A DNA stretch of 64,000 nucleotides from Takakia lepidozioides (lineage: Eukaryota > Plantae > Bryophyta). The stretch is from contig CM060732.1 of the NCBI GenBank assembly GCA_030704615.1, positions 67,828,001 to 67,892,000 on the forward strand. Direction: 5' to 3'. Within the stretch, counting starts at the first letter, position 1. Each line of letters opens with the position of its first letter. A program made the translations under genes and the position numbers. Shown here one piece after another: positions 4,081 to 55,400 of this stretch. The notes below the pieces were generated by a model. That model saw nothing but the letters and a program-made list of their open reading frames with translations. It did not search any database and was not told the DNA's origin.

Positions 4081-4589
4081 TTTGTTCATTGCTTGACCTA
4101 CATGCAAGAACTGCAATAGCGTTACATTTCCCCCTGCAGTGTTTCTATTTTAGTAGTGCCAGTGTAGTTTTGTGTAACAGTTGTGCAAGTTACTCTGGGT
4201 TCTTTCTCTACTTCTGGCACCCACAGACCAAATTACAGATGTTGTAGAAGATACTGAAGTAGCGGAAGGATGTCAATGCTGACAAGGAGACTGGCTTTAA
4301 AGATGGCCTTACCCACCACACTCTTCAACCATGACCTGGGCAATCACCAGATTGTGATTGCACTTGAATCATGGTGGCTGGCTCTGCTTTCATCCAAGCC
4401 AACCCTAATCAAAAGGGGCCTTTATGCATTTATGTGTCATTTAAGTCTTGTGATCTGTGAAAACCACTTGTGGGCAGCTCAGGAACCATATTCAACCAGA
4501 GCCTTGCATAGAACAGGCTTAAAGCACAAAAACCCAAGCATCTTTCAAACACAAACAGGGGAAAGACCATACAGAAAACATCATCCTCC

Positions 4590-10099: not shown

Positions 10100-11960
10100 G
10101 GGTGTGGAGGATTTGAGGTCTGGCAGAGTGTTCTCAAGTGGTGGGCAGGGGAGGGAGGCATTTGTTTGGCTTTTTAGGAGTTGTGCAAGTTACAATGCGT
10201 AGTTGAGGGAGAAACGCAAAGAGTGAGGTGGAGATTCCAGGAGCCGGTTGGATTTGGAGGGAACGCATCTCGTCAGGGGGTTATACATCTGGCTCATACA
10301 TCGAGAAAGGGGGTGGAATGACAGTAAAACCGTGAGACCCACAGTAGCAAGCACTGTGTTAGAAACTGCATGGGTGAATCCTGGGCTTGTGCAGCCCCAA
10401 AATCTGTGGGGTTTTTCTAGATTTTCAGCAGACACAGATTGGGGAGAGATGGACGATTATGATGAGGTTTCCGAGAGATGCCAGCAGGGCAAGACAGTGA
10501 GTAGCTGTCCCCTGAGTTCCTGTCGATGCGGTTCCCTGCCAGAAGTATCGGGACAGGCCTGGAAGTCAATGACGGATGGATCGCCGCAGAGGAGGCCACT
10601 CTGTTCTACAGCGAGACAGAGTCGACACAGAGTTGGCCCAGGCAACGTATGTGAGCACAGACAATCTGTGAACTAGTGGCACACTTTTCTTACAAAGTTT
10701 ATAACAAGGATGAGTTGCTTCTGAGTGGGACATTGGAACAGGTTGAGCACTCGGCAGACACAAAACGGTTATGATTCTGTGAGTTCTATTTCAAGGAGCA
10801 GTATGCTAACGTGGAAAATGGAGTGCAACTGTGCTGTCAGACAATCAGGGTGCGTTTTCCTCATAGACAGCATGAATATTTGACCGTCTGATTATCTCTC
10901 CCAGCACTCTTTGTTGGTCCATACTTCGGGCATCCATTAACCTTAGCTGAGACCATGCAGCCAGAGGTCAAAATGCGAAACCACTCTGGATGCAATTGAA
11001 GTCGACTGGTAAACGGAATGTTTACTTTCGATGTGCTGCATGTTAATTTGAGTTAATTTGAGTTAATTCAAGCCACATGCAAGACGGTTTTTCATTCACG
11101 CATCGAAATGGAGAGAAGATTGCTGTGGACTGGTGGTTGTATCATACTAGAGGTGGATGGTGGTTGTCTGAAGTTGAGTATCGTGTGGTTGGGATGATGG
11201 TTTTGGTACAAGTGCCTATGTCTCTTAGAGGTTCCAGGAAGTCCTGATGGGCAATGTGCTGTTTTGCAGGTGACAGAAGGCAGTACATTTATGGATCTTA
11301 CCGACAAGACAGCTCAGCTGGGCTATGCTTTGGAATGGAGTGGATACGGAGAAGGCGACGATGGGCAGATGTCATGGTTCAATGCAGGGGGTTAGGGTAG
11401 GCATGGGCATTGGCGGGCTTGTGACTAGGTGTGGGCATTGGCGTTTGTCAGGACATACCATGAAGACTCTCAGAAGAGTATTCTTTTAGCCATGTGTGCG
11501 ACGTATGCAGCTGTCACAGCAGGCTCCCTGCTGTGAAAGAAGCTTTGTTGTTAGAATGGCCATGTAATAATTAATGGCTGGAGGCAGCTGTGTCGCGTAG
11601 GGGGAAATGTTTGACGGAGGAGAAGAGCCTGTGTGCCACGCATTGAGCAAGTGGTTACAGATGACACAGAGCTGTCTGTCACTTCTAAAATTTGTGGCTG
11701 AGCAGAAGTTGAGAGGTGTGAAAATTCTGCAACTTCGATCATGTGATATTCTGGCAGTGCAGCTGGCACACCTAGAGAATTGATTCCTTGCTTCAGAAGA
11801 TAATGACCAATTGAGGTCTATTAGCAGCCACTGGCGAATGTAGGCCTGCAAGCACTCTTAAGCTGGGACAGTTCTTTTGTTGTCTTTAGGTAGCAATATT
11901 GGCCTCTGGCCTTGTTATGGATCTGCAAAGGTGGGAGCTCTCAGGCCAAGTACTCTCGTA
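10100..11960 (+). pseudogene. Decayed inverted duplicate of the At1g01500-like gene at 21.1-23.3 kb
   Basis: Collinear similarity to the reverse complement of ~23275-21110. It covers the 5' leader, MDDYDEVS, the internal intron (GACTG|GTAAAC...TTGCAG|GTGACAGAAGG), GYGEGDDGQMSWFNAG and the 3' UTR, with deletions and frameshifts. Confidence 0.92.
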
Positions 11961-21654: not shown

Positions 21655-22926
21655 CTACAAGAATCCTCTTCTGAAAGTCTTCGTGGTAGCTTGGTACGTC
21701 CTGACAATTAGGCCTACGCCGATGCCCACACCTAGGCACATGCCCAGGCCAATGCCCACGCCTACCCTAACCCCTGCATTGAACCATGACATCTGCCCAT
21801 CGTCCCCTTCTCCGTATCCACTCCCTTCCAAAGCATAGCCCAGCCCAGCTGCTGCTGCTTTGTCGGTAAGATCCATGAATGTACTGCCTTCCGTCACCTG
21901 CAAAACAACACAATGCCCATCAGAACTTCCTGAAACCTCCAGGGGAAGAGGCACTTGTACCAAAACCATCACCCCAACCACACAACTTGAGACAATCTCT
22001 AGTATGATACAACTACCAGTCCACAAGTCCTCTCGGCATCCAGGGTACATGGATATTAGATGCATGGATACAGCACGTTTTTGCTTGTGGCTTGAATTGA
22101 CTCTTTACATAGATATCCCAAGCTTTAACACCCAAGCAAAAGCGAACATTCCCCTTACCAGTCCAGGCTGGTCGACCGTCATGAGGCTGTATTGTGATCT
22201 GCCGACTTCTTCGGCTTCAGGAATGGCATCCAGAGTAGTCTGGCGATTGGACCTCCGCCGGGCAGTCAGCTGCACGGTCTCAGTTAAGATCATTGGCGTC
22301 CCTGAGAATCGACCAACCACGCACACCTCGAGCGCTGGCAGGGACAATGAGACGGTCGAATACTCGTGCCGTTGTTTGAGAAAAACACACCCTGATTGTC
22401 CGACAGAAGAGCTGCACTCCATTTTCCATGCTAGCGTATTTCTCTTTGAAATAGTGCTCACAGAATCATAACCGTTGTAAGCTTTGGCGTCTGCCGAGTG
22501 TTCAGCCTGTTCCAATGTCCCACTCACAAGCGACTCATCCTTGTTATAAACGTCATATGAAATTGTCCCACTGGTGCGCAGATTGTCTGTGCCCACGTAC
22601 GTTGCCTCGGCCGACTCTGTGTCGACTCTGTCCCTCCGAAGAACGAGAGTGGCCTCCTCCGAAGGAGCGATCCTCGCGCCATTCACTTCCAGGGCTGTCC
22701 CGATACTTCTGGCAGGAAACCGCATCGACAAGAACTCAGGAGCATCCTCAAGAGGACAACCACTCACTCGAACATAAATAACCCTAACATCAAACCACGC
22801 TTTGGCTTGTGTCGCCGCAGCGGTGTTATACGCATACAAACCCGACGCTGCTGCTCTGCTATGGTTCTGCCCTGCTGGCATCTCCCTCACAAGAAGAGAA
22901 CCAGACACCTCGTCATAATCATCCAT
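21655..22926 (-). CDS. At1g01500-like conserved plant protein with C-terminal Gly-rich membrane segment, 336 aa
   Basis: Exons 22926-22159 and 21897-21655 (phase 0). Motifs WFDVRVIYVRVS, LRRDRVDTESAEATYVGTD, EVCVVGRFSGTPMILT and EGDDGQMSWFNAGVRVGVGIGLGMCLGVGIGVGL. The start Met at MDDYDE is inferred. Confidence 0.9.
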
Positions 22927-23949
22927 CTCTGCCCACTCTGTATCTGCTGAAAATCTAGAAAAATACCACAGACTCTGCGGCTGCACAAACCGAGGATTCG
23001 CCCATGCACTCTCTAACACACCCCTTGCTACTGTGGGTCGGAGGCTTTCTCTGTCACTCCAACCCCTTTCTCGACACATGAGCCAAACAAACAATCAACC
23101 CCCCGATGAGATGCTTCCCCTCCAAACACACAACCGGCTCCTGCAATCTCCCCCTCACTCTTTGCGTCTCTTCCCTCTTCTACTCATGGCAACTTGCCTA
23201 ACTCACAAATGCAAATTCCCTGCCCACCCCCTTGCCCCCACTCCGCTGCCAGAACCCCAATTCCTCCACACTCCGAGATCCTACGCCACAACAAACCCGA
23301 ATCCCCCCTATCACAAATTTGCAAATCACGCAACTGCTACCATAAATTCCATAACCTTAACTCTCTAAACTTACTACCCTCTCTACTCAACGAACACCCT
23401 TGCAGATTGTCCAGCCAACATGGCCAACGACCATCCTCCGCTACTTGGCCGCGAGGCCGATCTACACAACACTCTCCCTCGCGCAACGGACTCGCTAGCG
23501 CGTCGTCTGCCATTACTGCCCGTCCCTGCTCGCCTTCCTCCCCAAGAAGACGAGCCTCCCACAGCCCCCACGCCCATCCATGCCCATGCCCATGCCCATG
23601 CCCATGCCATCACCCTGCATGGACATGGCCATGCCCGTTGCCTCCCTTGACTAGGGTTCAAATCCCCGCCGGGCAGCGTTGTCGGAAACGGAACTAGGAT
23701 CAGGGGCGGCCGGCATCCCGCGGGGCCGTTTGACCCAGCGGACGGAACCTTCCACTACTCATCTGTTCGGTCGGTCTTTTCATTCATCAGTCATCGAAAC
23801 TGATTGCCGAGTCATGGAAATCAAACCAATTTAAATATATATAGAAGTGGGGAAACCAGGCGCGGCTAGTTAGTAACGTACTAACGTACTACTTAACGAC
23901 GGTGGGGGTAAGATAATAATAAAGTCCTTTCACTTACTCCCAGGCTAAG

Positions 23950-26723: not shown

Positions 26724-29700
26724 CTAAGTTGAGTGGTAGAAGTGGTGTAACGGCACAATTGTGACAAATTTCGGAGGTGCTGCATTCTGAAGAAAGTACA
26801 TACAACGGGTCTATATCTAGCTGTCTTGCCTAAGGTCAACATGTGCCCTCCCAAGTCTCTCGGAACTCCTTGATCTCAACCTCGTATGATGGTCCTGGAA
26901 CAAGACAATCCATATGTTAACATCAGCTCCGTGAGCAGTGCCGCATGGACTAGTCATAATAAACCTTCTTGCAACAATTTGAGCTAAATATTATAGCAAC
27001 TGCCCTATCCAAATTTAAGCAAATATGTATCTTGGTTGAGAGGCATTTATATTAGAACCAGCACAAACATGATCTCTGGACCACCAGACTATGTGAAGAT
27101 AGCTCAGAAGAACCTCAATGAGTTAGAAAGACAACTATCCAGGTGACACCTTTAGAAAACCTCATGACAAGAATGCTTTGCTTCATTGGGAGTAAGACAG
27201 CTCCACCAAGGTCTAACTCAACCAAACACTAAAAGCAACTCAAGTCAACGCGTCTCCAATTGGATAGTGCTGGGTACAACTCCTACGTTTGCTGCACGCA
27301 CTAAATAGGCACTCAACTCCATTTTGTTCCAAAACCTAGCTTTCCTGGAAGAGGATGCTTAAGTTCAAAGAGTCTCATACCATCTTCAACTGACGTCCTT
27401 TCTTTCTGCGGTCCAAAACCCGACAGGGCCCACCTTTTGCCATTGGCACCGTAACAAATTGATCTCCCTGCAAGAACTTGGAAGCCGTTTCCAATACCTC
27501 AGGACTGCGGGCTATCTGACCCCAGCTAGGAAGAGGAGTTGCCTTTGAACTCTCCACTGGGTATGTCCACGAAGACTCATTCGTTGCGGTTTCCATGCTC
27601 AGTTCAGATAAATGACTAACCTGTTGGGATAGAGACCTCTCAAAGAAGTCTGACTCATGACCAGAAAGTTCCCAGAGTGCCTCAGCCCCCCTTGCAGTAG
27701 CAGTTGGTTTCAAACCACTCCGAAGGATGCGATTTCTCACTGATTTGGGACTTCCTACTCCTGGGGTAGCTGGTAAACTGGCAGACTGCTTAGAGTGGTG
27801 GGACCTGGATGCTGACCAAAACTCAGACAGGTCCACCGAGTGGGGACGTTGCATTGGTGAGCTGGACCTGCGTCGTTTTTTCCAGAATAACCTCCTATGC
27901 TTCTCGTGCACTATGTACTTCTGTCTGAGTTTGTTCCCTCGCAATACGTAGTCGGAATCCACCCGGAGGTGGCAACCAGGCTGCCGGATGCCCCGAGAGC
28001 TTAGTGACTCCCTGCAGACATCATTGCTTCACAGTGTATCTGAGGATGCCTATGAAAGGACTTGTTTGGAATTCAAGGCACATCTGAACTTATTAGGAGA
28101 AGACAAGTGGACTACATTCAAGAAAAGTGTGCACTGTCACCGTAATTAAGCTTCAGTGATGTGACCAGTGCGCTGCCAGGGAGATGTACACACTAGTTGC
28201 TGTGGCACTGTGCCCAAAGACCCTGCACCAGCTTTGATGAGAGCAGGAAAGGGGGCAGAGGAATAGGAGGACAGCACAATGGGACCCCTGGCTGTGAGGA
28301 GGGCTCGCTCTAGGAGTAGTACCTACCTGCATAAATAAGGTTGATCTTGGACATTCTATAATTTCCAAAGCTGTTAAGCAAAATGGAGCATCACCTTCGA
28401 CGGGGGATTCCTCCAGAAGTTTGCCCTGCGATCTTGCACTTTTAACTGTACGAATGGCTGTGCTTGGACTTATACCACTATGATGAAAAAGGTATGAAGA
28501 GAGGGAAGGAAAAGGGAGAACAAGAGGTAATTTATGAAGTCCACAAGAGTTATACAACAACATCCAACCGTGGAGATTTTTTTCTCAAAAAAGAGAAAAA
28601 ATGTATGTCCACAGGAGGGCCCAAAGGCCCTACTAGAAGGGAAATGAAATGGGAGAAAAGAAGGAAGGAAGACATATGAGGGCCATGGAACAAATTGCAA
28701 CTACAAGAGAGGGTGACAGCTCACCGGGAAAATTTTCTGGACCGGTTTGTGATACCATACTCCTCCTGGTTGGGAGATGAATGATTGCTTTGCTTATCAG
28801 TGGAAGCACCATCTCCTTTGATGGATTGGGGGGTGTTGAAAAAGTCCGGAAGTCTTTCTGTATTCCAAGGTGAAAAGTCAACTGACCCGGACAGTAGCAT
28901 GTGTTCCTCTTCTTCATCAATTGTCATTCCTCGGGTCCACTCTTTCGGAGAGAGAGGTGACCGCCCCTGTCCCCATAAGGGGCTCTTTGGAAGATAGGAC
29001 TCATCTGCAGGTTTCGACATGTTCCTATTGTGTATTTAGTAAAAGGTCCTCCGATAGGTCCAAGTAAAGTGGCAACTGCGTTCTCCTCCATGGACTTACA
29101 CAAACCTGGAGAATCTCTCTTCCTTCTACAACAAGTCTGCATACTGTAGAGTCAACTATTGTGTGCACTACTGTGGGAGCCATCTGGAAGGTACTCCACT
29201 TTGTTGCAACTCAAGAAGCAGATTATTCTACCTGAGCACCATCTGTGGACCCCTAGGGTAACATGACACTTTTCAAGAGGAAGAAACCACACCGCACTCT
29301 GTAAGTCAAGAAAATTACAGCTAAGAGTTGCTGGAACTGCCAACTGTGCTTTTTAAAAGCGTCTGAGGCCTACATTCTGTGGCATTTGTGCAGCTGAGAA
29401 TCTACTGCCTTCAATTTCACAATGGTACACATAAACCATTCACCAGCTGCGAGCACAATGACACTCCAGCTACACAATAGATTTCTGCATTATGCACACA
29501 GAAAGACAAGACCAAACACTCTGCCAGAACTGACCCATAATCAAGTGAACAGTACATTGGAGTGCCAGTGAGAACTCACCAGATGAGTAGGCAGTGCCCT
29601 TCGTTAGGTAGACCACTAATATGCACAAACACTCAGCATCCAGTGTTGATGTATCATCTAACTGACCCATTTACCACAAACTTTAATATCAAGATTGGGA

Positions 29701-32700
29701 ACCTGCAGCAGAGAGCTGTCCACAATTCCATTTTGGACTAACATATGTGATTATAGTCATTCTCATTGAACAACAAACAGGTATCATAATTTGTTTTGAC
29801 TTACCATCATTGTCGCTTAAATTGAAGCCCTTGTGCAGCATGGCAGCACTTGGTTGGTACTGTGCAGAGTATACCCTTTTCCTGCAATTGGGTGAAAGAA
29901 AGCTTCTGTCTTCTGCCTGAATCCCTTTATTTGCCGAGTCCCTTGTGGCTTTCTGGCTAGCATGACCAACCTGATTCGAGAGACCTCCATTCTCACTTGG
30001 CTTCTGACTTGGTGCTCGTGAAGGCGACCAGGAGTGTGTACCAGACGAGTCCAGTGAAGCAGGACTGGAAGTGACGAACTGTGGCTCAAACCCCGATTTG
30101 CCACCAACCTTACCATGTCTAGTGTTCTTTGTTGCCTTACTGGGGATTCGCTTCTCACTGGACAGGGCCACAACAGTGGGCCTAGCCACACCCTGGCTAC
30201 TACCTGGCATGTGCAGGCTACCCTTGGTGGCAGGGCTAGCTGCAGTCCTCCTTGAAAGGCTGTCGTCGTCGTTGCTGATTTCACGCATCAGCGTCTTGAG
30301 GTCGTCAATGTACATACCCATACGAAGGGGTGTGCGCACATGAGAGAGGTCAGTAGGAAATTGCCGTGCCTCCCTGGTAATAGTTCTTGAGACATCTCTC
30401 CTCATATTTGGACTGCTGTAGGTGCTGCCTTCGTAGATTCTCTCGGGAGATGAGCCCACAGAAGATGACGGGCTTGATGCACAGTCCTATTCACCAACAT
30501 ACAGCCCGTTTTGACATGTTCTGCATCATCTATATGAGTTCCAACAAAGCAACAAAACCTAATTCTAGACGGCTATACATCTAGTTTGAGCTCACCTCAA
30601 ACATCCTAGCCTCAAAAACAAACAGTGTAGATTTTGAAATTTTTACCCCACACATACAGAGCCTCTCCCTCTTTAAGCAGTTCTTTGGTTAATGTGGTTC
30701 CACGGTTCTTACGAGTTACTTGTGTCCCTTGGCTCTTAGGCCCTCACATGGATGAAATGAATTCAAATCAAATTTCGTGCTTTACACAAGGCTCTCAAAA
30801 TGAAGGATCACGAGATTTTGATTGTACGTTATTTTATGGTTGTGATGGTTAGTTGTTGGGGGCCCCAACTTTCTGTCTTGCATCTCTTTCCCCTTTGTCC
30901 CATAAGCTCTTTCAGCCTTCCGAGGAACATTTCTTTTTTAGTTGTCCAGTCTATTACGAAATCCGAGGCCACTACTAGTGCCTGTTCAGGGACAGCCAAT
31001 CCCTCATTGAGGTCTGTAGCATATCTGCATGAGGATCTCCAACTTAGAAAATCTCTTGATGTCGAATCATAGTTTTCAGGCTGCTTGTTGAGGGCCCCAC
31101 TTTCTTATTTACTGTTTTCTTTTGTTAAACAAGCTCTTTGTGCTTGTCATGGACATTCTAAAGATTTTCTTTTTCTTTCACTATTTTGTTGTTGGGTAGG
31201 TGAGGAAGGATAAACTTTAGAAAACAAAAAGTTTGGGGAACCAAGTCCTGTAATTCTTGGGGGGAGGGAGAAAAGGGGAATGAGCATAGAAAACTCTGCA
31301 ACCAAAACCTTCAATCAACAACTTGGGAAGCCAAGAAATGCCAACCAAGACATCTCTACCAAGCTAACGATGAGGGTGCGCAAACCAACCACCTCTCCGG
31401 AAGAAAAAGCAAGCCAAGGAAGGAATTTATGAACACCAGCACCAGGTTTCTCCCATTTTTCCCTTACCTCTGCCCTCTATCTAATTGTGGTGATCCCCTT
31501 AGTACAGGCATTGAAGGCTTATCTGGTATCTAGTACCTTAATTAGGGACGTCTTTGAGATTGCCTCGTGCAAGTTGGCTACAGAGGATGGGCGTAGGTCC
31601 TGCCATGACCTCCTCATGCCTTCATTGATAGGGCTCCCTCGACCAATTACTGGAGACGAGCTTCGGGGGGGTGTTGATGATGCAACGCTGCGCAGCCTCT
31701 CATCAAGCTCTCGCACCTGAAAGCAATTTTCCAAGTTTCGCATGTACAATGAGAAACTGAGCAAAACTGAAAACATACGCTTGCAGTAGCCCCTTAAAGG
31801 TCCTTGATCCAAAACATAGTATGGCCACACCTTGTCACTCTATGGGAATATATGATCCATCGCAAGGTATCCGAAGGATGGGAACATCTTCACAATAAAT
31901 TTTCCATCTGAATGCCAACACCATTCTCACCTGGTCTGAAAGTGATCCAAGAACAAAGTTCAATGAATGTGCCTCCTGAGGACTCCTTGCTTGTAGCACA
32001 CTTGCACTCCCTCCCTTGCTCACTCTTTGACTTTCACCCAGCGTATGGAAATGCTGTGGAGTTTTCCCAGAACAGAGTGGAGTTTTGTTAGTTACTCTAC
32101 GGGAAAAAGGACTGCATCTCTGATCCTGTGAGCCTGACTGCTGGAATGTGTACTGTGTTCGTGTATTGTCAGGGCTTTCCACCAGTGGAATATCTGACCC
32201 CGATAACCAGGGCCTTTTGTAGGGCCGCTCTGGATAGTCTTTTTGCCTCTCTGGAGTGACTGCTTCACTTGTGAACTCCTGTGCTCTTAGCATTGCATTG
32301 AAGAAATCACCGCCAAATTTTCCAGTCCTCCAACCATCTATGAGCTTTCCAGCAACATCACGAGCAGTAATTTGCCCCATACTTTTTCGAGGTTTTGGAA
32401 GTTTTGAAGATGTTTGCCCATGATCCCGTTCTGCACGTCTTCGACATGATAGGCTTTCATAGGAGCGGGATGAAGCTCTGGCATTCCGTTCGGTGGGTCT
32501 CCTTGCTTCATTGACTTTTGCAGGGCTGCGCATGGATGGAAAATTGTGGCTAATGGGAGTAGCCTTATCTTGGCTTCTTCCAGAGGAACCAATCAATGGA
32601 AGTGGCTGGACAGCACCACAGAGCGTCAATGAGGACTGTGACCAGAAACATCAAGGCATGATGAGAACAGCATCAGCTATCTCCAAAAGATATCATGAAC

Positions 32701-35700
32701 AAACATTGCATAAATGGCGGGGGTGAGGGGTATACTCCAGCTATGGCAGGGTCAACTCAACTGGACTCCCTGGCTAAGTTATACCCTGGAAGACAGACTT
32801 CATGCAGCCTTGGAGGAAAATTTGATACTATTTCTTCAGGCTCCATGAAAGTGGTGATTGAAGGGTAGAAGTCCAACATTAGTGAATATACAAATGAGTG
32901 ACCAAAGTATTCAGGGATAGTCAATGGTTTGTGGAATAGGGACCATGCACATACAATCCATCATTGAAGTATATGAGCAGAGATAAAAACAAAGGTGTCA
33001 TACCGGTACTCTACGTGGGGATTTGAACCGAGGCGGGGTTGTTCCAATTCCTGCATTGTCAACCAGCTTGCCTGTGCCACTTGTTGGCATCCCAAAACTT
33101 CTTGTACCCTGACCTAGGATTTTCATGTCTTTTACCACTCGATCGTGTGGGGTTTCCGACCCGAGTGCAGGTAGACATCTCACACTGGACAGGATTGGGT
33201 GCCCCTTTGGATGATTGGTTTTTGGTAGCTGTGTCCCTGGGGCGTCTGCTCTTCCCTCATTGCCTTTCAGTTTTTCATGAATGAAAACGTGGCTTGTGTT
33301 GCTTGGTTCAGGATTCCTTGCTCTTGGAATGGGCGAAGAAGGTGTCGACTTGACAGACCCAGGTAGTCTAGGAGTACCGTTACCTCTGTCAAAATTGCCA
33401 TGGCTCAACCCCACCAAATGATCAGTTTTCCGGAGGACTCTTGGGTCCAGCTTCTTCCATGAAGCTCTCCTTGTCAACAGCCTCACACCCTCCCAGTTTT
33501 TGTCCTGCAGGTCCTTCAAGTCTCTCCTTTTCATGGAACCTTCCTTGGGAATTCTATTGTCAAACACCTGCAGAGATTGTCAGCAAGCAATCCATTTTTG
33601 TCTGTACATTGCAGAGTTTGTTAGCAAATAAGAGGATCACTGCAGAGGGATTACTGCAGACAGAAATAACATCTATCATTATGTTATATCATAATCTGTA
33701 GAACTCCTTGTACTGCAAAGAATCCAGTTCTAACTTTGCTCTATGATGAAATGGATCGCCCTTACGTTGTTGTCTCTCAGATTGCATAGACTAAAGTCCT
33801 GAATAAAAGACAAAAGAAAGACAGATCGAATAGATTGGGTCGAGAGTTTCTGCCGCCAAATATATCACATTGATGAATTCACAAATCGTCATAATTTCTG
33901 AAGTTTTCCACAATATTGAAACGAACTGGACTAAGATCCTCTATCTTGCGACAATTCTGCAAAACAGAATGTGTGTAATGGAAGGTTACACTTTTCAATT
34001 AGATTTGATGTTTTGTACCAAAACCTGGACAATGATAGCTAACACTTCTAGACTGCTTGTATCTTGGTCTGCATACATGCGAGTTCGTTTCTGTAAGCCC
34101 CAACCTTATTTGACTTCACAGAGACCTAAAACTGCAAATGACATAAAGAAGCAATATTGCAAAAACTTCACTGAATTCAAAATGGCAGTTCAATCAGGGA
34201 TGCTAATGTTCGAAGAGGAAATGGAAATGGAAATGGTGCTTTATAGTGTTCACAGGAAGCCAAAGAGAGTATGTGGGTGGATGGGCCAGAGGAAGGAGAC
34301 TGCTGAGTGTACCTCACTGGCTCGGCTGTTGGACAAATCATTAAACAATCGGTCATTTGCATTGGGGTTTGCATTAAGACGACCCCTTGCAGTGCCAAAA
34401 GCGGAGGCTGCACCCGTTTCTTCCCATCTCATTTCAGGTTGGTCACAAGCCCGCCGCTGTGCTCCGTACACAACCCGCACTGATTCCTGGCGACTTTGAT
34501 CAACGGAGGGATCAATAGCAGCATGAAGGAGATTACTGCACATAGCAACAGACTCAACAGGGTGTCTAGACCCTCCGTCCCGACCACTGACCACCTCTGC
34601 GGATGCTCTCCCTCTTGTAGGGGAAGGCAGATTTGAGTTGTGTGACCTATACACATCTTCTTTGATGTTCTCTTTCACACTTTCGATGATAGAGGCTCTC
34701 TCATCATTGGCAGCTTCCTTTTCCCACAAATCTACAATACATGATAGCCGTGCGCTCTCCGCTGACGTCCCTCTGGTCTGAGAGACCTTATTTCCTGGAT
34801 ATCCAGATGAGATGAAAGGGGGTTTCCCCGTCTGTTTTCTTGGTTCTGAATGGGGCCTACATCCCACAGTATGGGGTCTGTCCCCATGTGCAACATGAGC
34901 ATGGCTATGGATGGTTTTTCTTGCCCATGTTCTGCTTGGAATTCCCAGATCTCTGACCCCGCACCACCTCACTGGATCGCCATATCGAGACAGAGCTGGC
35001 CAACCTCTCTTTGAAGGGCTTTTGTGCTGAATGGCTCCTTCCCCTCTCTCCTTCTCAAGTTCCCTTTTCCTTCTGGCTGGTCCAGCTTTTGCACTCGTAG
35101 GCCTCTCGCTTGCAAGCTCTCTCGAACACCCAACCTCCTCTTTTTCTGTTTTTCTTTCACTCTCCTTTCCTGCTTGGCTGAGCCTCCCAACAACAAAAGG
35201 AGATCTCACTTTTGGAAGATCCAATCCTGTAGTTCGTGCGCTCAGAGGTCGAGAAACGACCAGTGGGCAACCAATGGAAGCCCTCCTGGGGGATTGCACT
35301 TCACTTTTGAGGGGCTGTGCTGGGCTCTGGGGTAAGGACTTTGAGACTCTAGGCTGAAGAGTTTCATTCACCTCACTGGCAATGCGAGCCGGACAACCAA
35401 CTGGGCTTCTCCTACCAGCGACCTTTCCAGTATTCATGGTCACAGCTTCACTGTCATCCCCACCTTCTTGAACATCCAGCTGCTGATTGCCACCTTTTTT
35501 GGGCTCATCAATTGTGCAGGCTCTCCCATGGAATGATCCTCCAACTACACCCTCTTCCTTCTCATTTTTCTCCAAAGATACCTGTATGGTAACATTCAAA
35601 TTTGATGGCATACTTTCAAGCTCAATCTCATTGCTTGTGGCCATATTGTGCTTCGTGGGTGATATGTCCCTTAGCATTACGCCGCCTCCTTTAGTTTGTA

Positions 35701-38700
35701 AACCTGCACAAGGGTTGACAATATTCCAGAAGAGTCTGAATCTGGTTTTACACAATGACAACTTATCTCTGAATGGCTCATTCTCAATTCAAAGCAAATG
35801 TATCCATAACCTGATCCGAGAACAAAATATAGCTCACAGCAGAACAGCTCATGAAGTTCTGGAGCAATTTCCCTCATTAAATGGTACTACAATAAACCAG
35901 GCAAACGGCACAACCATTAGATTGGAAAGCTTCAGTATCTGTACTCCCAAACTTAACCACCAAACTGTCCTCATATCTGCAGATCATTTAACAACAAGAG
36001 GGGACAGCCTCCTCAACAGAGATCACGGTTGACTGAAGAATTGATGTGGCACATGTGCATCTGAATAAAGGAGAATGCATGATGTACAAGAAGCTTGAGT
36101 TACAGAGTAGGTGAAAGAGGGTCAAATTGTGAGATTTCCTCCTGCTTTCACCTCCTACGGTGTGCCTATGACATACCAGGAAACAGTATAGCCTTCCCCA
36201 CAATGAGATATTTCATTAGGATCTGGGGTTCGATTTGGGGTTTCCCTCCGCATGGGCCTGGGCCTGGGCTTGGGCTTGGGTCTTTCTACTAGATTACACC
36301 TCGAGCATGTGAGGCTGCTGTGTGGCAGTCCTGCACAGGGCACCCCACAAACAACCCCACAGTTTTTATTATAATGCAGTACTCCTGATTGGAGTTCTAG
36401 TATGTAATTGAGTCGCAAATGAGGGCTCAAATCTCATCCAAGGACATCTGATTTCCAAATCAGCTTTGGAAAACCTGTGTACCTTTGTTGAATCTGGTTT
36501 AGTCCCTCAATGCCCTGTAGCTACATGTGTTCTCCTGAATGCCTGACTTATGGATGAGAGAACATCCATCACCCTTGTGTGTGGCATATGTATGCTTCTC
36601 TCTATGTATCCATTATTCATATGTATCCATCACCCTTGTCTTCATGGAGGACAAGCAAACAATGTCTGGTCTATCACCAAAGAACACAAGCAAACCGCAG
36701 GGGGCCTCTTTGGGTCAGAAACCGTTCAGAAATGAATCGAACAGATTTCTAGAATGCGGGTGGAGGATAAACTTCGAACTGTAGTTGCACTCTAAGATAG
36801 TTAGCTGTGTCAAAATATCACTAGTGGGCAACTGGGGTCGAAAACTCTGAATGCTGTCAAATTGGACACATGCGACTTTCAAAATATCGGACTCTAGTGA
36901 CATCAACTTCAGTACATTGAAGCTTTTCCCCATAAAATTTGAGAGAAGGGCTAAATACACCAGAGCAACCCCAACAAATGAGACTTCCACTCCTAGTGAT
37001 CCACCATGGTTTTGAAATATAAGGGTGTACTCAGGAGTAAGAAGAAAAGATGAAAATAATATTGGTGTCTAGAGCTTGTCAATCAGAAGGTCTTAGTGAG
37101 TACTCTATGCCAGTCTCTCTCAGCTCTCCACCATCCAAATCTGTGCAGCAGGTACTAAAATTTCTTTCTCTGTCAACTAATGTGTATCCCTCCAGGGTTG
37201 TGTGCTTCACACCTGGATGAAATCAGGTGTACTGCAATGATTTCCACATGTCTCTTTATCCTCCTTAAGCATTGCTTTTAGAGGTCATCGTTTACAGGCC
37301 ACAATCCTGATTCAACAAGTTCTTGATGCTTTATGCAACAGAGTGGATGTGATCCATAATTTGAGTTTTGCACTCATGGACAACCCATTTCCGTCATTCC
37401 ACAAACCATAGGGTCAAGCACAAAGCAAAGCAAGAGTTGCAAAGCAATGAAGCTTGTACCAGGGCCTAAACCTCCATGATGACTCAAGAGAGCTCAGAAG
37501 AGGGCAAAGGGAAAGCATGATTTCAAGACTTGCCTTCTTCTATTTCAGGGGGCTTGGAAAAGCATGCAATATGTCAGACAGAGCACCGTCTGCATTTCAT
37601 AAAGCCATGGTAAGAACCTACCTGGGGCACTCGATCCATTAAATACCACAACAATATCCATACATTTGAAAACCATTTGGTCAATGCTGATGGAATGAGA
37701 GAAACCTGGGTTTGATAGTGAATCAGATGGATTGTGCTTGACATGGTCAGTGTGGTCACAAGAAACCCTAGGGCCATCTTGAGGCATGGGGCTATGCAAT
37801 CCCTGCTGTTGCTCCCCTTCTTTTAGAGCTTCCTCTGGCTCGGGCTTCAGCCATGCCACTTTCTGCAAACCCATTGCTGTGATTATCTGGAGGAGAAAAC
37901 ATCATTACGGAGATTAGTTTGGTGGCCACCTTCAGGTTGGCTATGAAATGTGGGAGCGACACTGTCCACTCACTGCCAAAGAAAAGGGCACATACTGTCT
38001 CACTTTCTCCCTCTTTCCCCTCCATTTCCCCTCCACTATGAGGACCAGAAATGCTTGGCAGCTTACCAAGAGGCCTTCACCCTTAGACAATCCCTTGAGC
38101 AGTAGTTTTTTTTTGGCTTTGGTTTTGTTTCCTCTCTCATGTTTTTTCCCATTTTTTGTCCCATAAGCTCTTTGAGCTTTCCGCGGACGTTATAAAGTAC
38201 CATTTCATTTCATTTCTACAACGAAAAAAATCAAACATGCTACCAGAATTTCTGCAACTCAGCAATGACTATTACCTGCTCATTCTGCACTCTTGTGGTC
38301 GCAGTGTACCCTCTCTTCACCTTGCGTTTGTTATAAATGTGGTCAAGCTCAGCTTGGCGTGCTCTCAGTGACTTTATGCTATCTCGTTGTGACTCTGCGG
38401 CCAGCCAGGCATCCGATTCTGACTGTACGGGCTGGTTGACCACTGCAGATGAAGGCCGATTGGTACGGTCCCGCAGCACACAAAAACGGGAGTGCAGGTA
38501 TGTATCCTTGAAGTCAATGGGTTGGCCTGAGAGTCGTGTGTAGACAAAATTTTGATTCAAGTCTTGGCTTGTTGGGGGATACACCGTTTGGCAGCAGCCT
38601 GACCCGAGGAGTATCTAAGGGTCATCATCCAGACTTGGCATTCACAAATGCTAACAATTTATTTTGTTGAGTCCTTTTATGTATCCTGCGCACAGATATC

Positions 38701-41700
38701 TTTTTCGACACATGTCATAGCATTATGAGTTGTGGTGACTTCTCTTTCTACCTTAAATGCTGAGTTACCTGTCTAGAGTCTACACCCCCTCTGCACTGAC
38801 AAGCACCCACAAGTGTCACATCTGTGCTATGCTACACTCTGGCCTATTGATCCACAGTCAACTGGCAGTGTTTCTACAGCTACATTTGTGACCTTACATT
38901 TCAAGGTGGCCAGAGTGGTACTGGGGACATCTATAATGCCAGCTCTTGAACCAATACTCCAACCCAGTTAGTGAATTGCCATCTGCTGTGTGTGAGCACT
39001 TGGGCTTTGTTAACTACCCTAGTGGTCTAAACCCCATGGCCTGTTCCATGAGGGTCACAGTATTCCTGGGGGAGATTCTCACAGGGTATATAGTAGCTAG
39101 CATTACAGGGAACTCTTAATGAGCACCTTTCTATTCTTGAAGACACAATTCGATGTATGTATGAGTCGTCAAAAGTCTACATCAGATCTGAAATTAGTTG
39201 TCATTGCATGATAGTCTTCTGTAAGCGGTACCAGGTCTATCTTGCAGCTTTGGCTTGGTGCTCTTGGAGTAGAGGCGGGCAAGGCTCCTCTCAATGTAAG
39301 AAGCATTTTCCAATACCTTCCTCCGATCCACAGCAGCTCTTTCATGTTTCTCCCTTTCCTCTCTAAGTGCACGTTCCTGCGATAACAGGTGTCAAGGTAC
39401 TAAAGTAGCAAGAGGTATTTAACAACCTACAGGCACTGTTTATACTATCTGAGAGAAGAAACATCAAGAGAGACAATGCATGAACTAAGGACTGTGCTAA
39501 CAGAACAAGAGAATGAAATCACTTATGCAAATCCATGCTTATGTGAGTTTGTTCCAAGTTCTTTCAGAAAAGAGTTCAAGAAGAGGGGACAGTAATCGAC
39601 CTTCTGCATGGCCTCCTCAAATCGAAGGGTGTCCCAGCAACGGCTCTCTTCCGCCTGCTTTGTCAGCAGTGCTTCCTTGGCTGCCTGAAACCCACCAAAA
39701 CTTGATGTCACTCTACACTATTTCGTAATAAACCACTACCCCAGGTTGAGTTCATGGAAGAGTGCGGCTTCCAAGCAAATCTACCATCCACAATCTCACT
39801 AAACTCACATGGCATGGACCATAGAAGAATGGTTGAGCAGCATTATTGTACCAGACATAGTCCATTTACACCCATGCACTACACTTGAAGGCCAATGGAA
39901 CAAGATGCACACAAATTACTGTACTGGTAAGCCCTCCTCCAGTCTGTCATAGATACTGTGAGCTAAGAAACATCGGTGTAGGTCAAAATTGACTACATTG
40001 ACCCAAGCCACCTGTATGTCAGTCAAGAGACTTGCTTCTATCTCTAAGGTGCCCACAACCTGAGGAACATGCAGTTAGCTTAAATTGAGTTTAGGATGGA
40101 ATATCTGCACCAAAAGATAGGAGAGAAGTGGCTACTGGAATAAAGATGTGTATTTTACACTTCCTTCTCCTCTCTCTGTCCAGTTCAACATATTACAACT
40201 TTGCATGTCAGTCATCCACAATACACACACAAATTTCTTGTCTACAGGGACAAAATGGAGGAAGACCTTGTTACGTTCTACCAGCAAGGCAGCATCATGA
40301 CTGAGGCCAATGCTCTGACATGCACTCACAAACTCTTCCTCCAGACTTGCAATACGCTTTCGCTGATCCTCTCTCCACACCTCCTGCATTCTCCAAAAGT
40401 CTGTATCAGCCCCACTACTGTGCTTGGCAAAAAGCTAAAAGCTCTGAGTTCTTCAGCCATGGTACAAAAAAATTCGCAGAGTACGCTAGATCTTGAGAAT
40501 TTTGCAGAAAAAGACAGGGAACAAATGAAACACGATTAATTACAAGTCACAAAAACTATCAGAGTTATAACCTGAAGCCATACAACGTCTACCAGTGCCT
40601 GGGCATGAGGTACTATGTAACCTTCAGATGGTTGAGTAGCCTCTGCTTGTCTTTGGTTCTGCGGCTGTGAAACTCTTCCACACGCTGCGATGCGAATAGC
40701 ATTTCCTGAGCCCGCACCTGTCCCCAACCCCACCCGCCAGGTATGTGCCCTTTGATTTCGAGACACTCAACAACTTGGACATGTTAAGGCATTAATCTAC
40801 ACAATCTACGCCACACAGAATGTTCAATTGATGCTTTGCACATGCTCGCCTTTGTCTGGTACTTGATGAACAAGTGTCCAGAAATGGGGCGGCGCTTTCG
40901 GAGATTATACATCAAACAACAACACTATACAGATCTCGAAGTTAAATGTTATCAAGTCCATCCTACTCTTCCACAAATCTACGAATCCTGTATCTGTGAA
41001 CATAGGATCCAGCAGTGTCTTGGACCCAAACTTGTATTTTGTCAACATGTCATACTAAAACTGTAAGCTTTATACTGAAAATGTCAAGCAACATGCCTAT
41101 GAAACACAATGTCATGACATATTTTCTTTGTCTTCATGTTGTGAAATTTCAGGCTGGTCACTGCGTAGTGTCCATATGGAACATTCATTTTAAGTTCCTG
41201 ATAAACACTTTCCTGCAAGTTACCTTGGGTGTGACAGGGTTCAATTTGGCCCTAGCCGTGTAGTCATATCTCTGGATGTAGTGATTGCGGATCCAGTCTT
41301 AGTTTCTAGGTCAGCTAGAGCGACTGCAGAAAAGGTTAACAATCATTTACAGGCCAAATAAAAGAACCTGCAAGATGCGGTTGGTACGCAGCTTCTCCTG
41401 GTACTCGCGGATGGAATTGGCCGCCTCCTCTGTGCTCAGATGATAGGTCCCATGTCCACTTTTCTGAGTCAACCATCAAATGCCTATCAAATTTTATCTG
41501 AAAAGCTTTGCTGAAGAAAAGGTATGTGTGAAGATGAAAGCTCAATTCTTACATGTGACTGATTCATTCAGAATCAGCAAGCAGAGACTGATGAGGACAT
41601 ATTCATGGTGACGTGGCTTATGACTTCTCCATTTTCTTTCAAGATAGTTTCGCTACCTTCATGTATGGTGGACAGTCAGGATGCGACATGGTTAGAGTTT

Positions 41701-41851
41701 CATGAACTTTTTGTTGCAGCGTTTGCTGGCGTTTTTCGCGCAGCTCTTCTGCCGTCTTCGGCACTGGCGCTGTGCGGTTCGTGTCGAGGTTCAACTTCGG
41801 ACTACATTGGTGCCTTCTAAAAGAATTGCGCGACACAGCTTTGGTGTCCAT
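26724..41851 (-). CDS. Large CEP295/Ana1-like protein (~1,886 aa): conserved N-terminal coiled-coil domain plus long Ser/Arg/Pro-rich disordered region
   Basis: 16 phase-consistent GT-AG exons: 41851-41657, 41463-41368, 40717-40622, 40383-40267, 39684-39601, 39376-39232, 38526-38276, 37886-37706, 35703-34313, 33567-33004, 32635-31931, 31716-31537, 30486-29805, 29004-28725, 28011-27381, 26786-26724. The spliced N-terminus reads LSTEEAANSIREYQEKLRTNRILQVRAQE...LLNHLKEVWREDQRKRIASLEEEFVSACQSIGLSHDAA...DAWLAAE...KRGYTA. Confidence 0.72.
38044..38215. repeat. Interspersed ~170-bp intronic repeat family (possibly an L1-type 3' end on the minus strand)
   Basis: CAGAAATGCTTGGCAGCTTA...CCCATAAGCTCTTTGAGCTTTCCGCGGACGTTATAAAGTACCATTTCATTT. 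Also at ~53215-53330, ~53338-53515 and ~56090-56262, with weaker copies at ~30880 and ~31125. Confidence 0.8.
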
Positions 41852-43433
41852 TCTCACCGCAACTTTCCAACTTTTCAAACGTTTAGGAAAACATTTCTCT
41901 GTTTCTCTTTCTCCGAGACTATGTCCTCATGTCTCTCAAAAACCTTGTACACATCATATCTCATGCAGTGTATCTTTCTTCTCATTCTCAACCTCCACGT
42001 CCTTTTCTCCCTCCATCCTTCTCAACTAACAATTTACTAAAATTTCTCCTCTCCAGCATCCCTCCCATACTCAGCTTACACAAATCCTTTCCTGTCTCTC
42101 AATCTCTCTCCCTCTCCCCCATTCTTTCACTCGCGCACAATTTGGTTCTGTCACTGAGAAGAGCAACGTAATTGCGAGCAGACCGAAACCAATCCACAGC
42201 ACAGGCCGCGAGCGTCTCCAAGTTTCCCGCGCGCTTTCTTTGCCTGCGTAGCTATAGCGCAGGTAGCGCAGGGCCGCAGTTAGTTGGGAACTTGGAGACG
42301 CTCGTTTTTTACTATTCTCATACTTTTTTTGTTTTTGTTTTTGTTTTCGTTTAAGCAAAATCGTTGGACACTTTTATTTCTTAAAAGGGGCCACTCAGGC
42401 CTGGTAATCAAATTAAAAAGCAAGGAAAAAATGTATTTGTGTACAAAATAGATCGAGTGAGCAGTCGCTCCCAGGTTTCCTCTATTTAAATGCTTAAAAA
42501 ATTTAAATTTTATTAAATAAATTTTCAGGGCCATTGTCCCCTGTCATCCAAAAACAAATAAAAAAATAAAAAATTACTAGGTGTAACAGGCAAATAATAT
42601 TTTTCAGGATAAATATATAGTCTACATATAATGGGGTTCAAAAATAGTCGAGTCTTATTTGTAATAACAAGGAAAAAACAAAGAGCAGAATCAGTTTTTC
42701 TAAAGTTTTCTAAATTCTTTAATCGTCTGTGATATAACTGTCATTAACTGTCGTACCCCTTTGTGTGTAACGAGATTGCCCCTCCAAACAAGAGATTGAT
42801 CGAAATCTTGGCGATGATGAAGTATATAGCTTGCAGTCACTGATCCACAGCCATTCTTTTGTTTTCAGTTCCATCACAGAGCCTGGCGATGCTCAGTTGC
42901 AGCTGATTGTTGAGAGAGCAAGGGATTCGCTCAGTGGAAGAATGTCCTCATTGCATTATGCCCGCAAAGCAGAGAGTGTCTGACAGATGAGAGGCAATGC
43001 AAGAAAAATGTACTCAGTAGACTGCTTGCATCTAGCTTTGTGGCCACTTGCTTCCAGAGCAAGAACAGGAAAGGGGTGTAGAGCCAGGGTGGGGCTCATA
43101 CAGCTCAATCTGGGGAAAAACTCGCAAGTGGTAATAACCAATAGGTGTGTTCTGTTGGATAGTTCTCTTGCAGTTTTCTTCCACTTGACTCACCAGAGTA
43201 GGGATGGTCTACCAAGGACCACCAAAGCACAGCAGCAAATAAAGTGATCGAGGAATGCCATCCATAGCAGTGACAGGACCTGCTATAACCTGACCAGCTC
43301 TTCAAAACTAGCTACAGAATTTTGACTGAAGAACAATGTAGAACCTGCACTAGTGTTACGGAGACTTTCTCCAGAAAATGGTACAGAGGAAACTCTAGGA
43401 ATGGTTTTACGACAAGGCGCTACCTGGCTACTA

Positions 43434-52400: not shown

Positions 52401-55400
52401 TGGTTAGATGATGCTCTTTATTAGTGTGCTGTGTGACAGTCTCAAAGTGAAAGGTATTGTGCAATCTTTGATAGAATAATCATCAGAACTTTGTTGCTTG
52501 GTCAAGAAACCCTAAAATCTTGCTAGACCCTAACAGCAGCTTTCAGCTGTTATTAGGACCTTTTCCCTCTCAATTTTCCAGGCTCCCTTGGACTGTCTGC
52601 TACAGATTCTCTCTACACATCAGTGCAAAATTCCAAGTTGTGGTTGCTTGGGATGCCAAGGGTGTTTGTGTGCGGCTGGCTGTCTGTCTGTCCATCTTTC
52701 TTGAAAGCTTTACAAGCTAGATTCATTTTTTAAATCTTCCCGCTCAAACTGGGCGCGGGGTCAATGGTCACAAGGCTATGGCAAACAACGTCTTATGAGT
52801 ACATTCATTTTTTAAAGTATAATTGGTATATATCTGAAGAGTTAACTTTTGTTTTTGAATGCTTATCAAGCTAGATTCATATTTGAAAGTGTAATTGGTA
52901 GATTTCTGAAGAGTTAACATTTGTCAAGTGGGTGGATGTGAAGTGGGGATCACACAGTGAAGATAATTTGCTGCCGAACAGGCTATTGTCTGAAAGTCCT
53001 CGTTGGGCACCGTCGAACTCCATGGGTGGTGCGAGTCCCTCCCCACAATCTTTGATTTGGGTTGAAGATCTAGGGTTGTGTCCCTGTCTGGATATGCCAG
53101 ATATGTATCTAGCTGTTAAGATTTGACAAGTGAGCTTGAATTTTCCGTGGGGGTCCTTACCTCTGAGGTGTTTGTCTGTGTCCTGCAAGCTTCCTGTGAA
53201 CGTTACGAGTTCCTTTCTTTCTTTCTTCTGGGCTGCTTTTGGTTTTGTCTCTTCCTGTTTTCCCTTTTGTCCCATAAGCTCTTTCAGCTTTCTGCGGACG
53301 TTAATAAAGTACCATTTCATTTTATTTCTTCCTGAGGATCAGAAATGCTTGGCAGCTTATCTGCACTAAGCTTCGATCCCTTGAGCAGTAGTTTCTTTTG
53401 GGCTGCTTCTGGCTTCACTCTGTCTTTTATTCTTTCTTGTTTCTTGCTTTCCTTTTGTCCAATAAGCTCTTCGAGCTTTCTGCGTCCATTATAAAGTTCC
53501 ATTTCATTTCTTTTCTTTGCTTTCTTTTGCTTTCTTCCTCCTCCCTTGCTCTCTCCCCTTGTCCTCTCACTATTGCTTCCTCTTTAATCACAAAATTTAC
53601 TATGCCAGTCATCAAGGACCCAAACATGCTCTGTGTCTTGAGTGCTAGCCAACGCCATGGCCGAGTTCTGCTGTTGTGTCTGTAGCTGTTATTGTGGCTC
53701 CATCTGTGAGTAGTTGTGTAGACCCATGCCTCTGTTTATGAGAAAGCCATTTATAAAATAAACCATATCCACTGCCCGGAGCTAGTCCTAGGGAAATGAA
53801 AATAAAAGGATGGTCTGTTATACTAGAGAGAATCCTTGGCCCTAGGACTTGATGGCCCTTTAGTAGAGAGCGGCGTATGTGACCAGGGATGGCCCTTTGT
53901 CACTTTCCTCAACTTATTATTCAAGGAGTCTCAATGGCTGGCTTGCATTGTGTGCAGGTGAGGTTTCATCCTAGCAGGTCAAAGGTGCTTGCCAGTGGGA
54001 GCCTTGATAATGAAGTCCGGTTATGGGATGCCAATACGGCAGAATGCACTGGCTCTCGCGACTTCTGTAATATTCACGACCCTCAGTGTTTCAGTTGTTA
54101 TGAAATGATGTCTTTCAAGTCTTCTTTCTCAGGCCACTGACCACATGTCTTACCAACTCTTGGGCACATGGTTGTTCATTCACATACTGTCAAACACTTC
54201 ATATGCATCCTTGATTCTCCCACATTTGGCATACATGTCCACAAGGACTGTGTCCAGAATGACTATTTGGTACAAATTCCGGCCTTCATGATGTCAGCAT
54301 GGAACCCTTTTCTCTTTTTCAGGGCTGTTGTGCTAGCACACACCTTGCAAATGGGACACACATGACCTTTTGGGCTTTACCCCTTCCTGCATCATTTGCC
54401 CACAGGTTTCCAAAGCCTCCATCCACACCCATGCCATGCATATCCTGTGATTATTGTATTCCATGATGTTGTTAAGCCATATTGTTGAACAATCCCTTGG
54501 CATCACTGATACTCCCACATTTGGCATGCATGTCGGTGAGGGTAGTGCCAAAGATGATATTTGGCACAATCTGAACTTTAGGATGTCATCATAGATGTCT
54601 TTGCTCCTGAAAGTCTGGCACATGGGAGAGCAGTGATCAACATGACCTGGTTGGGTGGCAACCCTTCCCAGATCATTTGCTCATAGGACCTCCAGAGCTG
54701 CCATCCCAGCTCTCATATCCTGCAATCATCACACTCCCTTGGAACTTTCACACCCAAGCCAGCGTGTTGGGTCCTCTCCATGTCTGCAGGTATTGCAATT
54801 AAGTATTATTGCTTTCCCCTTCAAGGCTGAGTGGACTGTTTTGTTCAGTTATAGTAAAACACTTCTTCCACTGCTTCTCCTTGCCTCTTTTCAATCTTTG
54901 GACGTTTGTCCTTAGCTGCATTGAGCTTCTCCAATGCATCATAAACCATTGCAGGTTTCTTGTAGCTATCAAATCCTTAGGCCCTTGTAGGTACTCTTTT
55001 GCTTGACAGTTGGTGCTGGATCTTTTTGCCTTGATTTCCCCCCATTAACTTCACAAGAAAATATTCCTTCCAAACTTTCTCCTTGTCTGTATTTTGACTT
55101 TTTGGATATTTGGGTATGTGGCCTCCTTGCCCATCATCCTGTCCATGTTGTTCCTCCTCTATGGTCTCACAATCTGCTTGATGCTGTTTGCAGCAAATCT
55201 CAATGCAATGTGGTTTTGGCAATGCATAAGGGTCCCAAACAGAGTGTACAGCCGGACACATTTTTTAAGAGCGAGAACAGGGCCAATCTTGAAAGTAGTG
55301 TAGGATTGGGAATGCTACCGAGGGAACCCCGAGGTGTTACAGGAACATGTGGAGGAAGCCGTACTTTGTATGCCATGGCTAATCCTCAAACTTCGCAACC

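Follow-up and report, generated by a model that had tools for sequence, protein, structure and literature searches.

A spliced gene of the moss Takakia lepidozioides probably encodes a land-plant homolog of the centriole-wall protein CEP295/Ana1

Is the centriole-wall protein CEP295/Ana1 also encoded by land plants? It is usually discussed as an animal protein, and a review table scores it as present only in human and fly (PMC5371999). The question is raised by a 64,000-nucleotide stretch of the Takakia lepidozioides genome (GenBank assembly GCA_030704615.1, contig CM060732.1, positions 67,828,001 to 67,892,000 of the forward strand), hereafter called the window, in which all positions below are counted. 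An earlier reading of its letters, made before any database search (the sequence-only reading), proposed a gene of 16 exons with one open frame of about 1,886 residues, beginning with a CEP295/Ana1-like N-terminus and continuing into a long disordered body. The analysis reported here leads us to consider it likely that the product of this gene is a land-plant homolog, probably an ortholog, of CEP295/Ana1.

The first point to settle was whether a gene is present. On the minus strand, from 41851 down to 27375, small exons do splice to one open frame, with 16 exons and 1,890 residues, and all peptides cited by the sequence-only reading fall within minus-strand open frames between 38.2 and 41.9 kb. 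The public run X1, labelled 'RNA?', has contigs that skip six GT..AG stretches on this strand, which are, in the direction of the gene, 41464-41656, 40718-41367, 40384-40621, 39685-40266, 39377-39600 and 37887-38275. The contig alignments leave 1 to 2 nucleotides of slack at the joints, and depth is low (about 5 to 10). Since six canonical introns are gone at predicted exon borders, run X1 must be cDNA-derived, and the skipping of these introns also means that transcripts carry the RILQ|VRAQE and NHLK|EVW junctions that had been predicted from the letters.

Selection has acted on the encoded protein. A protein search with the large exon (512 residues) gave a sole match, an exon open reading frame on a 12.7-kb Logan contig (L001), and tblastx comparison with this contig found 79%, 63%, 67% and 54% identity in the small N-terminal exons and about 40% in the body. 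Two other loci, one in an ENA assembly (L005) and one in a JGI metagenome (L006), contain all of exons 1 to 7, with lengths and splice sites as in the window. Over exons 2-7, the ratio of non-synonymous to synonymous substitution rates (dN/dS) was 0.073 between L005 and L006 (dS 0.42); comparing the window with either locus gave 0.09-0.13. Such low ratios on the N-terminal exons indicate that the gene is more than a chance open frame. We conclude that the locus is an expressed, spliced and selectively constrained gene.

Annotated relatives were found in liverworts. An exhaustive HMMER search was run over 1.84 billion protein representatives, with an alignment of the window's exon 7 and the corresponding L001 exon as query. 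Ten matches were returned, two of which were repeat proteins and were set aside; the eight true ones were a 1,666-residue protein of Calypogeia fissa (P0008), a 366-residue fragment of Marchantia paleacea and six exon-sized open reading frames on plant contigs. No match had an identical exon 7, which means that the protein collection holds no model of the gene from the species of the window. A word-based search from the P0008 N-terminus added Mp5g11210 (= Mapoly0093s0043) of M. polymorpha and R1flu_016372 of Riccia fluitans; it gave liverworts only, its word filter and length window being unable to reach animal CEP295. The liverwort set (Mp5g11210/Mapoly0093s0043, R1flu_016372, CAM6102870.1 and CAM6100888.1 of Calypogeia fissa, and the M. 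paleacea fragment Mapa_000871) is annotated throughout merely as hypothetical or unnamed. Full-length orthologs measure 1,666 to 1,957 residues, with several isoforms of 1,484 to 1,957 residues for Mp5g11210.

The relation between these proteins and that of the window is beyond chance in the N-terminal region. A profile of the liverwort N-termini matched window residues 62-350 with 267 bits (hmmsearch, E 4.5e-84), whereas 200 shuffled sequences reached 5.1 bits at most. Identity of the liverwort orthologs to the window protein was 35-44% over the N-terminal 290 residues, and BLASTP against Calypogeia aligned 313 residues at 43% identity, plus collinear C-terminal islands. An alignment of six species has 56 invariant columns, among them HGTY, QEM, an SH..AA patch, KDTY.HSR and DAW.AA, and the Marchantia ortholog shows the same ILQ|VRAQE junction as the window gene. 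The liverwort bodies are too diverged to be aligned with that of the window and the C-terminal tails differ; the islands common to both are ARDVA.KLI..W..G, LGSLS.QV.ELDERLR, LLS.SVDFSPWNT and LRGNKL.

Some peculiarities of the liverwort genes were recorded along the way. Calypogeia has two copies, with N-termini 98% identical, on scaffolds CBCUJL010000018.1 (L002) and CBCUJL010000016.1 (L003), both adjoining a DUF924 gene; these are apparently homeologs or haplotypes. Annotated isoforms are not uniform within the conserved core, as seen in P0031 and P0035 of M. polymorpha and P0006 of M. paleacea: P0031 is devoid of QVRA at the exon 2/3 junction, and the P0006 model skips exon 4. These differences may reflect alternative splicing or annotation errors.

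The link to CEP295 comes from these orthologs. In precomputed Pfam 38.1 records, PF28375 (CEP295NL) is the sole family on Calypogeia P0008 and P0012 and on M. polymorpha P0035 and P0037, records that bear no 'weak' or 'faint' mark and so stand for E<=1e-5. The Calypogeia and Marchantia proteins being only 57% identical in the N-terminal region, these are partly independent observations. A feature search of the Atlas pointed in the same direction: the top two matches were chordate clusters named 'CE295 protein (Fragment)' and 'CEP295 N-terminal-like', PF28375 making up 98% of each, with scores of 0.88 and 0.88 for Calypogeia residues 90-430, and of 0.91 and 0.90 (170 and 168 shared features) for Marchantia residues 38-180. 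In the AlphaFold2 model of Calypogeia residues 85-440 (pLDDT 70, pTM 0.24), a first helix of about 165 residues and a second of about 100 flank some 65 disordered residues that contain KDTYFHSRF. The core of the liverwort ortholog is thus predicted to be one very long helix, then an unstructured KDTY(L/F)HSR, then a second long helix. When this model was used in a shape search, row 1 was the CE295 fragment cluster (105 residues, root-mean-square deviation 2.3, query residues 16-121) and rows 2-10 were generic coiled-coil families. By way of the orthologs, then, residues ~66-200 (exons 2-5) correspond to the CR1/DDC8-like domain, named CEP295NL in Pfam, which agrees with the CEP295/Ana1-like N-terminus claimed by the sequence-only reading. 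Pfam's automatic assignment of PF28375 also means that current models can already detect the relation between the plant proteins and CEP295.

In published definitions, the family has an N-terminal CR1/DDC8-like domain with a PINA motif, a PICA motif and, in vertebrates, an ALMS motif (PMC5007451, PMC13422256). CR1 (residues 19-134 of Ana1) is the region conserved in all CEP295/Ana1 homologs (PMC13422256); the DDC8-like domain is needed for the centriolar localisation of CEP295, the PICA motif covers about 43 residues near the C-terminus, and the ALMS motif found in vertebrate CEP295 is not required for centrosomes to form (PMC5007451). Human CEP295 (KIAA1731) and Drosophila Ana1 have the CR1/DDC8-like domain at the very start, as does the plant protein, although in the latter about 65 extra residues, encoded by exon 1, precede it. 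In both the domain order is collinear, with an invariant short motif between two helices, and a long, poorly conserved body follows the domain in a protein of about 1,700 to 2,600 residues. The window protein fits this range with its 1,890 residues, and fits the family also in being basic (isoelectric point 9.85 for the whole protein) and in its low-complexity body. After residue 352, S, R and P make up 13%, 9.5% and 8% of residues, and the remaining ~1,540 residues form the S/R/P-rich disordered body that had been announced, with a few conserved islands. One conserved C-terminal island of the plant proteins reads LLSGSVDFSPWNTE.LPD.F (also given as LLSGSVDFSPWNT). In Ana1, a Cep135-binding helix follows CR1 (residues 282-301, with invariant R282, F283, I286, V290 and E294; PMC13422256). 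A possible plant counterpart is an invariant HSR(F/L)..(L/V) about 100 residues past the core, in the stretch modelled as disordered.

Two other members of this landscape deserve mention. CEP295NL/DDC8, the testis-expressed vertebrate paralog after which PF28375 is named, has this family in common with the plant protein. CEP295NL is short, about 480 residues with little beyond the domain, unlike the plant protein, which has the full-length CEP295 architecture. SAS-7 of C. elegans is only a functional analog, described in reviews as the functional counterpart of CEP295 (PMC6678760).

Several observations weigh against the identification with CEP295/Ana1, or against a role in sperm. The link is indirect, PF28375 being recorded on sequences of the orthologs and not on the spliced protein of the window, and the same precomputed records show no PF28375 on the Riccia protein or on the M. 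paleacea fragment, in which exon 4 is missing. The Atlas scores lie at the edge of the useful range, the family is common to 5 of the 10 best named matches, and a search with exon 7 of the window alone returned noise. The shape match counts for little, since long helix makes up most of the model. The ALMS motif gave no Pfam match at E<=1, either on the exon open reading frames of the window or on the full-length Calypogeia protein, in agreement with the sequence-only reading, which had recognised none. Transcripts from run X1, whose label names no tissue, speak for expression as such and not for expression specific to sperm. Absence of the gene elsewhere is weak evidence, since the profile used was built from one exon of two species. 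Finally, intron 6 (38599-39231) is retained at least sometimes: one X1 contig runs unbroken from 39185, inside this intron, through exon 7, with the next intron spliced out. With the intron retained, the frame would end at 39196, after about 256 residues, leaving only an N-terminal part with the CEP295NL-like core. Two further scans were negative: M. polymorpha isoform P0031, without QVRA, has no domain in the precomputed Pfam 38.1 records, and a direct Pfam scan, with a release evidently without PF28375, gave no match on ten exon open reading frames of the window and two orthologs.

If the protein is a CEP295/Ana1 homolog, what could it do in a moss? Ana1 binds Cep135 and microtubules, and elongates sperm centrioles (PMC13422256). 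BLD10 is used in the basal-body assembly of mosses and liverworts, and the basal bodies of Marchantia and Physcomitrium depend on it (10.1101/2021.07.25.453666; 10.1101/2020.12.21.423647). By analogy, the N-terminal third could dock the protein on the proximal centriole wall, possibly via BLD10/CEP135, while the basic body might bind triplet microtubules; together, these two activities would support the elongation and stability of the basal bodies formed de novo in sperm-forming cells. We infer from this analogy a possible role in sperm basal bodies. Plant centrioles arise de novo and in the sperm lineage only, unlike those of animals, and CEP152, CEP192 and PLK4 are absent from plants (PMC5371999; 10.1101/2020.12.21.423647), the animal partners CEP152/Asl and CEP192/SPD-2 among them. 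Centriole-to-centrosome conversion is therefore unlikely to be the shared function.

The same absences can be turned into an alternative, in which the protein is a true homolog of the CEP295NL domain put to another use, as a microtubule- or spline-associated protein or a spermatid nuclear protein rather than a component of the centriole wall. Partners CEP152 and CEP192 are missing (PMC5371999), the plant proteins are devoid of the ALMS motif, their long bodies share nothing detectable with those of animals, the source tissue of X1 is unspecified, and CR1 of Ana1 is dispensable for both Cep135 and microtubule binding (PMC13422256). Yet the domain that has been conserved is the one needed for the centriolar localisation of CEP295 (PMC5007451), the named species carrying the gene all make flagellate sperm, and the exon-7 profile search gave no angiosperm protein. 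We regard this other use as unlikely, though it is the most serious of the competing explanations.

Less probable still, and in our view quite improbable, is that the protein is a coiled-coil and disordered protein of the plant lineage that resembles CEP295 by its helical, charged composition and not by descent. In its favour, the region is predicted as long single helices, the shape search found generic coiled coils behind its first row, Atlas scores come near the level sometimes reached by shuffled sequences, and the animal motifs from which the original observation started had been chosen after the plant sequence was seen. However, a promiscuous coiled coil would also draw matches of the myosin-tail or SMC type, whereas PF28375 was the sole Pfam family on four products from two liverwort genera, at E<=1e-5, and the same CEP295 clusters came first for two proteins merely 57% identical. 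Moreover, the liverwort profile matched nothing at E<=10 among 177,635 PDB sequences, which makes it unlike a promiscuous coiled coil; generic coiled-coil hits alone, the result that the sequence-only reading had named as damaging, are not what was obtained.

That the locus is a decaying or non-functional copy is very hard to believe: one RNA contig retains intron 6 with its in-frame stop, and no protein with this exon from this species figures among the 1.84 billion representatives, but the 1,890-codon frame is open over 16 exons with canonical splicing, dN/dS is 0.07-0.13, and the exon structure is kept in four species.

Returning to the CEP295/Ana1 homolog, its exons, all on the minus strand, can be described as follows. 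As far as the acceptor of exon 8, the borders were fixed by RNA, with two exceptions set by comparison: the end of exon 6 (39232) and the start of exon 7 (38598). The exon at 39232-39376 and the start of exon 7 at 38598 differ from the sequence-only reading, the splice sites now chosen being conserved in other species. Downstream of the exon 8 acceptor, exons were taken from a chaining script based on open frames, GT..AG ends and codon bias, and were trimmed where relatives showed no conservation.

The first in-frame start of the gene is the ATG at 41851 (start codon 41849-41851), in exon 1 (41657-41851); RNA contig 6, which extends over 41657-41901 with a splice at 41657, carries the 5' untranslated region to at least 41901. 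Exon 1 has weak matches in L005, L006 and the liverworts. Both borders have RNA joints in exons 2 to 5. Exon 2 (41368-41463, HGTYHLSTEE...RILQ), where the CEP295NL-like core begins, shares its splice sites with L005/L006, in which identity is 56-58%. Identity of exon 3 (40622-40717, VRAQEML...NHLK) is 79% to L001 and 66% to L005; that of exon 4 (40267-40383, EVWREDQ...SIGLSHDAA...) is 80-87%, and that of exon 5 (39601-39684, ending in AEESRCWDTLRFEEAMQK) 79%, in L005/L006. Exon 6 (39232-39376, ERALREEREK...) has an RNA-supported acceptor and ends in phase 1. Exon 7 (38276-38598) carries KDTY(L/F)HSR and the start of the DAW.AA helix; its donor is seen in RNA, and its acceptor follows from liverwort homology and from L005/L006. 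The CCTG|GTA donor of exon 6 and the CAG|G acceptor of exon 7 are identical in the three orthologous loci of other plants (L001, L005 and L006), and liverwort proteins align through the 24 residues added at these borders. A 'KRGYTA' motif, counted by the sequence-only reading among the likenesses to the animal domain, is not conserved in L001.

The disordered body starts with exon 8 (37706-37886), whose acceptor is RNA-supported, the contig reaching 37702, and whose donor comes from the script. Exon 9 is probably a microexon of 31 nucleotides (36300-36330, LPHSSLTCSR). We base this on a conserved block of about 70 nucleotides in four species, in all of which (4/4) a GT lies 31 nucleotides past the acceptor, on the preserved reading frame of the gene, and on the lack of any RNA joint to a longer exon; a 154-nucleotide version of exon 9 was rejected in favour of the microexon.

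The block itself is an observation in its own right. It spans the 3' splice site of intron 8 and the microexon (window 36300-36375, minus strand; about 45 nucleotides of it belong to the upstream intron) and is conserved at the nucleotide level in the four species, the other copies being at L001 3420-3500, L005 11700-11760 and L006 10820-10880. Synonymous sites are otherwise saturated among these species. The block suggests a splicing-control element or a regulated microexon.

Further along, exon 10 (34313-35669) is large and S/R/P-rich, an open reading frame with script borders, a third of which aligns with P0001 of L001 at 43% identity. Exon 11 (33004-33567) is likewise an open reading frame bounded by the script. 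Exon 12 (31931-32635), with the islands ARDVAGKLIDGWRTGKFGG and LGSLSDQ, matches Calypogeia, Marchantia, Riccia, L001 and L005, and its junction with exon 13 (31537-31716, VRELDERLR...), LSDQ|VRELDERL, equals the liverwort LSAQVKELDERL. Exon 14 (29805-30486), also an open reading frame with script borders, has a weak match in L005, and exon 15 (28725-29004), with the island LLSGSVDFSPWNTERLPDFF, is 47-52% identical to liverwort proteins and 55% to L005. Two script exons, 28395-28477 and 28222-28309, were dropped as unconserved, a direct phase-compatible junction being available at 28725|28011. Exon 16 (27375-28011), which carries LRGNKL... and SPEVLETASKFL..., matches L001 and Calypogeia and ends with the TGA at 27375-27377.

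This stop overlaps a possible donor (ATG|GTATGA). At the equivalent codon L001 has a GT and no stop, and the Marchantia gene has a short last exon at the place equivalent to the 3' end in the window. It is therefore possible, on splice-site logic and the Marchantia gene structure, that a further short 3' exon lies beyond 27375, at 26894-26817 or 26786-26724 on the minus strand; otherwise 26724-26894 would be 3' untranslated region. Neither candidate showed conservation or RNA support, and this holds for 26786-26724, which had been proposed from the letters as the last exon.

The rest of the window was surveyed more briefly. A dispersed repeat has copies at 38045-38217, inside intron 7, and at 53238-53516, 56091-56260 and 30894-30926; in both RNA-type runs the summed contig depth over this repeat reached 2,000-5,800, and variant copies were numerous. 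At 7603-9975 on the plus strand lies an intronless gene for a 790-residue PPR-DYW editing factor ending in CSCGDYW. The best matches of this factor, with 44-53% identity, are likewise PPR proteins and come from lycophytes, Ginkgo, conifers, mosses and liverworts (Diphasiastrum 50-53%, Ginkgo 47-51%). A non-LTR (LINE) reverse-transcriptase open reading frame occupies 1747-2901 (plus strand). Two opposite open reading frames, 10248-10676 (plus) and 22105-23094 (minus), have in common the N-terminal stretch RERGW.D...RPTVA..VLE.AW.NP..VQPQ.LW.FSRFSADT.W.EMDDYDEVS and look like a duplicated gene, with no family assigned. Scanning the window for Rfam families and tRNAs gave no match.

We come back to the opening question, and to how far such a gene extends among plants. 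In the exon-7 profile search the named carriers were all liverworts, the other matches being plant contigs, and no angiosperm or conifer protein was found with this single exon from two species among the 1.84 billion representatives. The sequence-only reading had held that retention in angiosperms would speak against it, and none appeared. Plant CEP295 was not reported in the literature searched, where the sole co-mentions with Marchantia were the review table or unlinked; a study of the moss bicentriole is silent on CEP295 (10.1101/2020.12.21.423647), and Mp5g11210/Mapoly0093s0043 was not mentioned in the paper texts searched or in the Marchantia-paper supplements examined. For the species and its nearest relatives, the protein sets searched seem to lack the gene, an illustration of how genes made of many small exons can be overlooked in annotation.

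Surveys treat CEP295/Ana1 as confined to animals, and a plant ortholog would push its origin back by more than 1 billion years. We lean, by a modest degree, towards the view that CEP295/Ana1 is an ancestral centriole-wall protein that predates the plant-animal split, that it was kept together with the de novo basal bodies of sperm and lost with flagella in the seed plants lacking motile sperm, and that its core function is the CEP135/BLD10-linked elongation and stabilisation of triplet microtubules, centrosome conversion being a later addition of animals. Plants, which build centrioles de novo, only once, and without CEP152, CEP192 or PLK4, would allow the ancestral job to be told apart from the centrosomal one, and the Marchantia ortholog Mp5g11210 makes this function directly testable.

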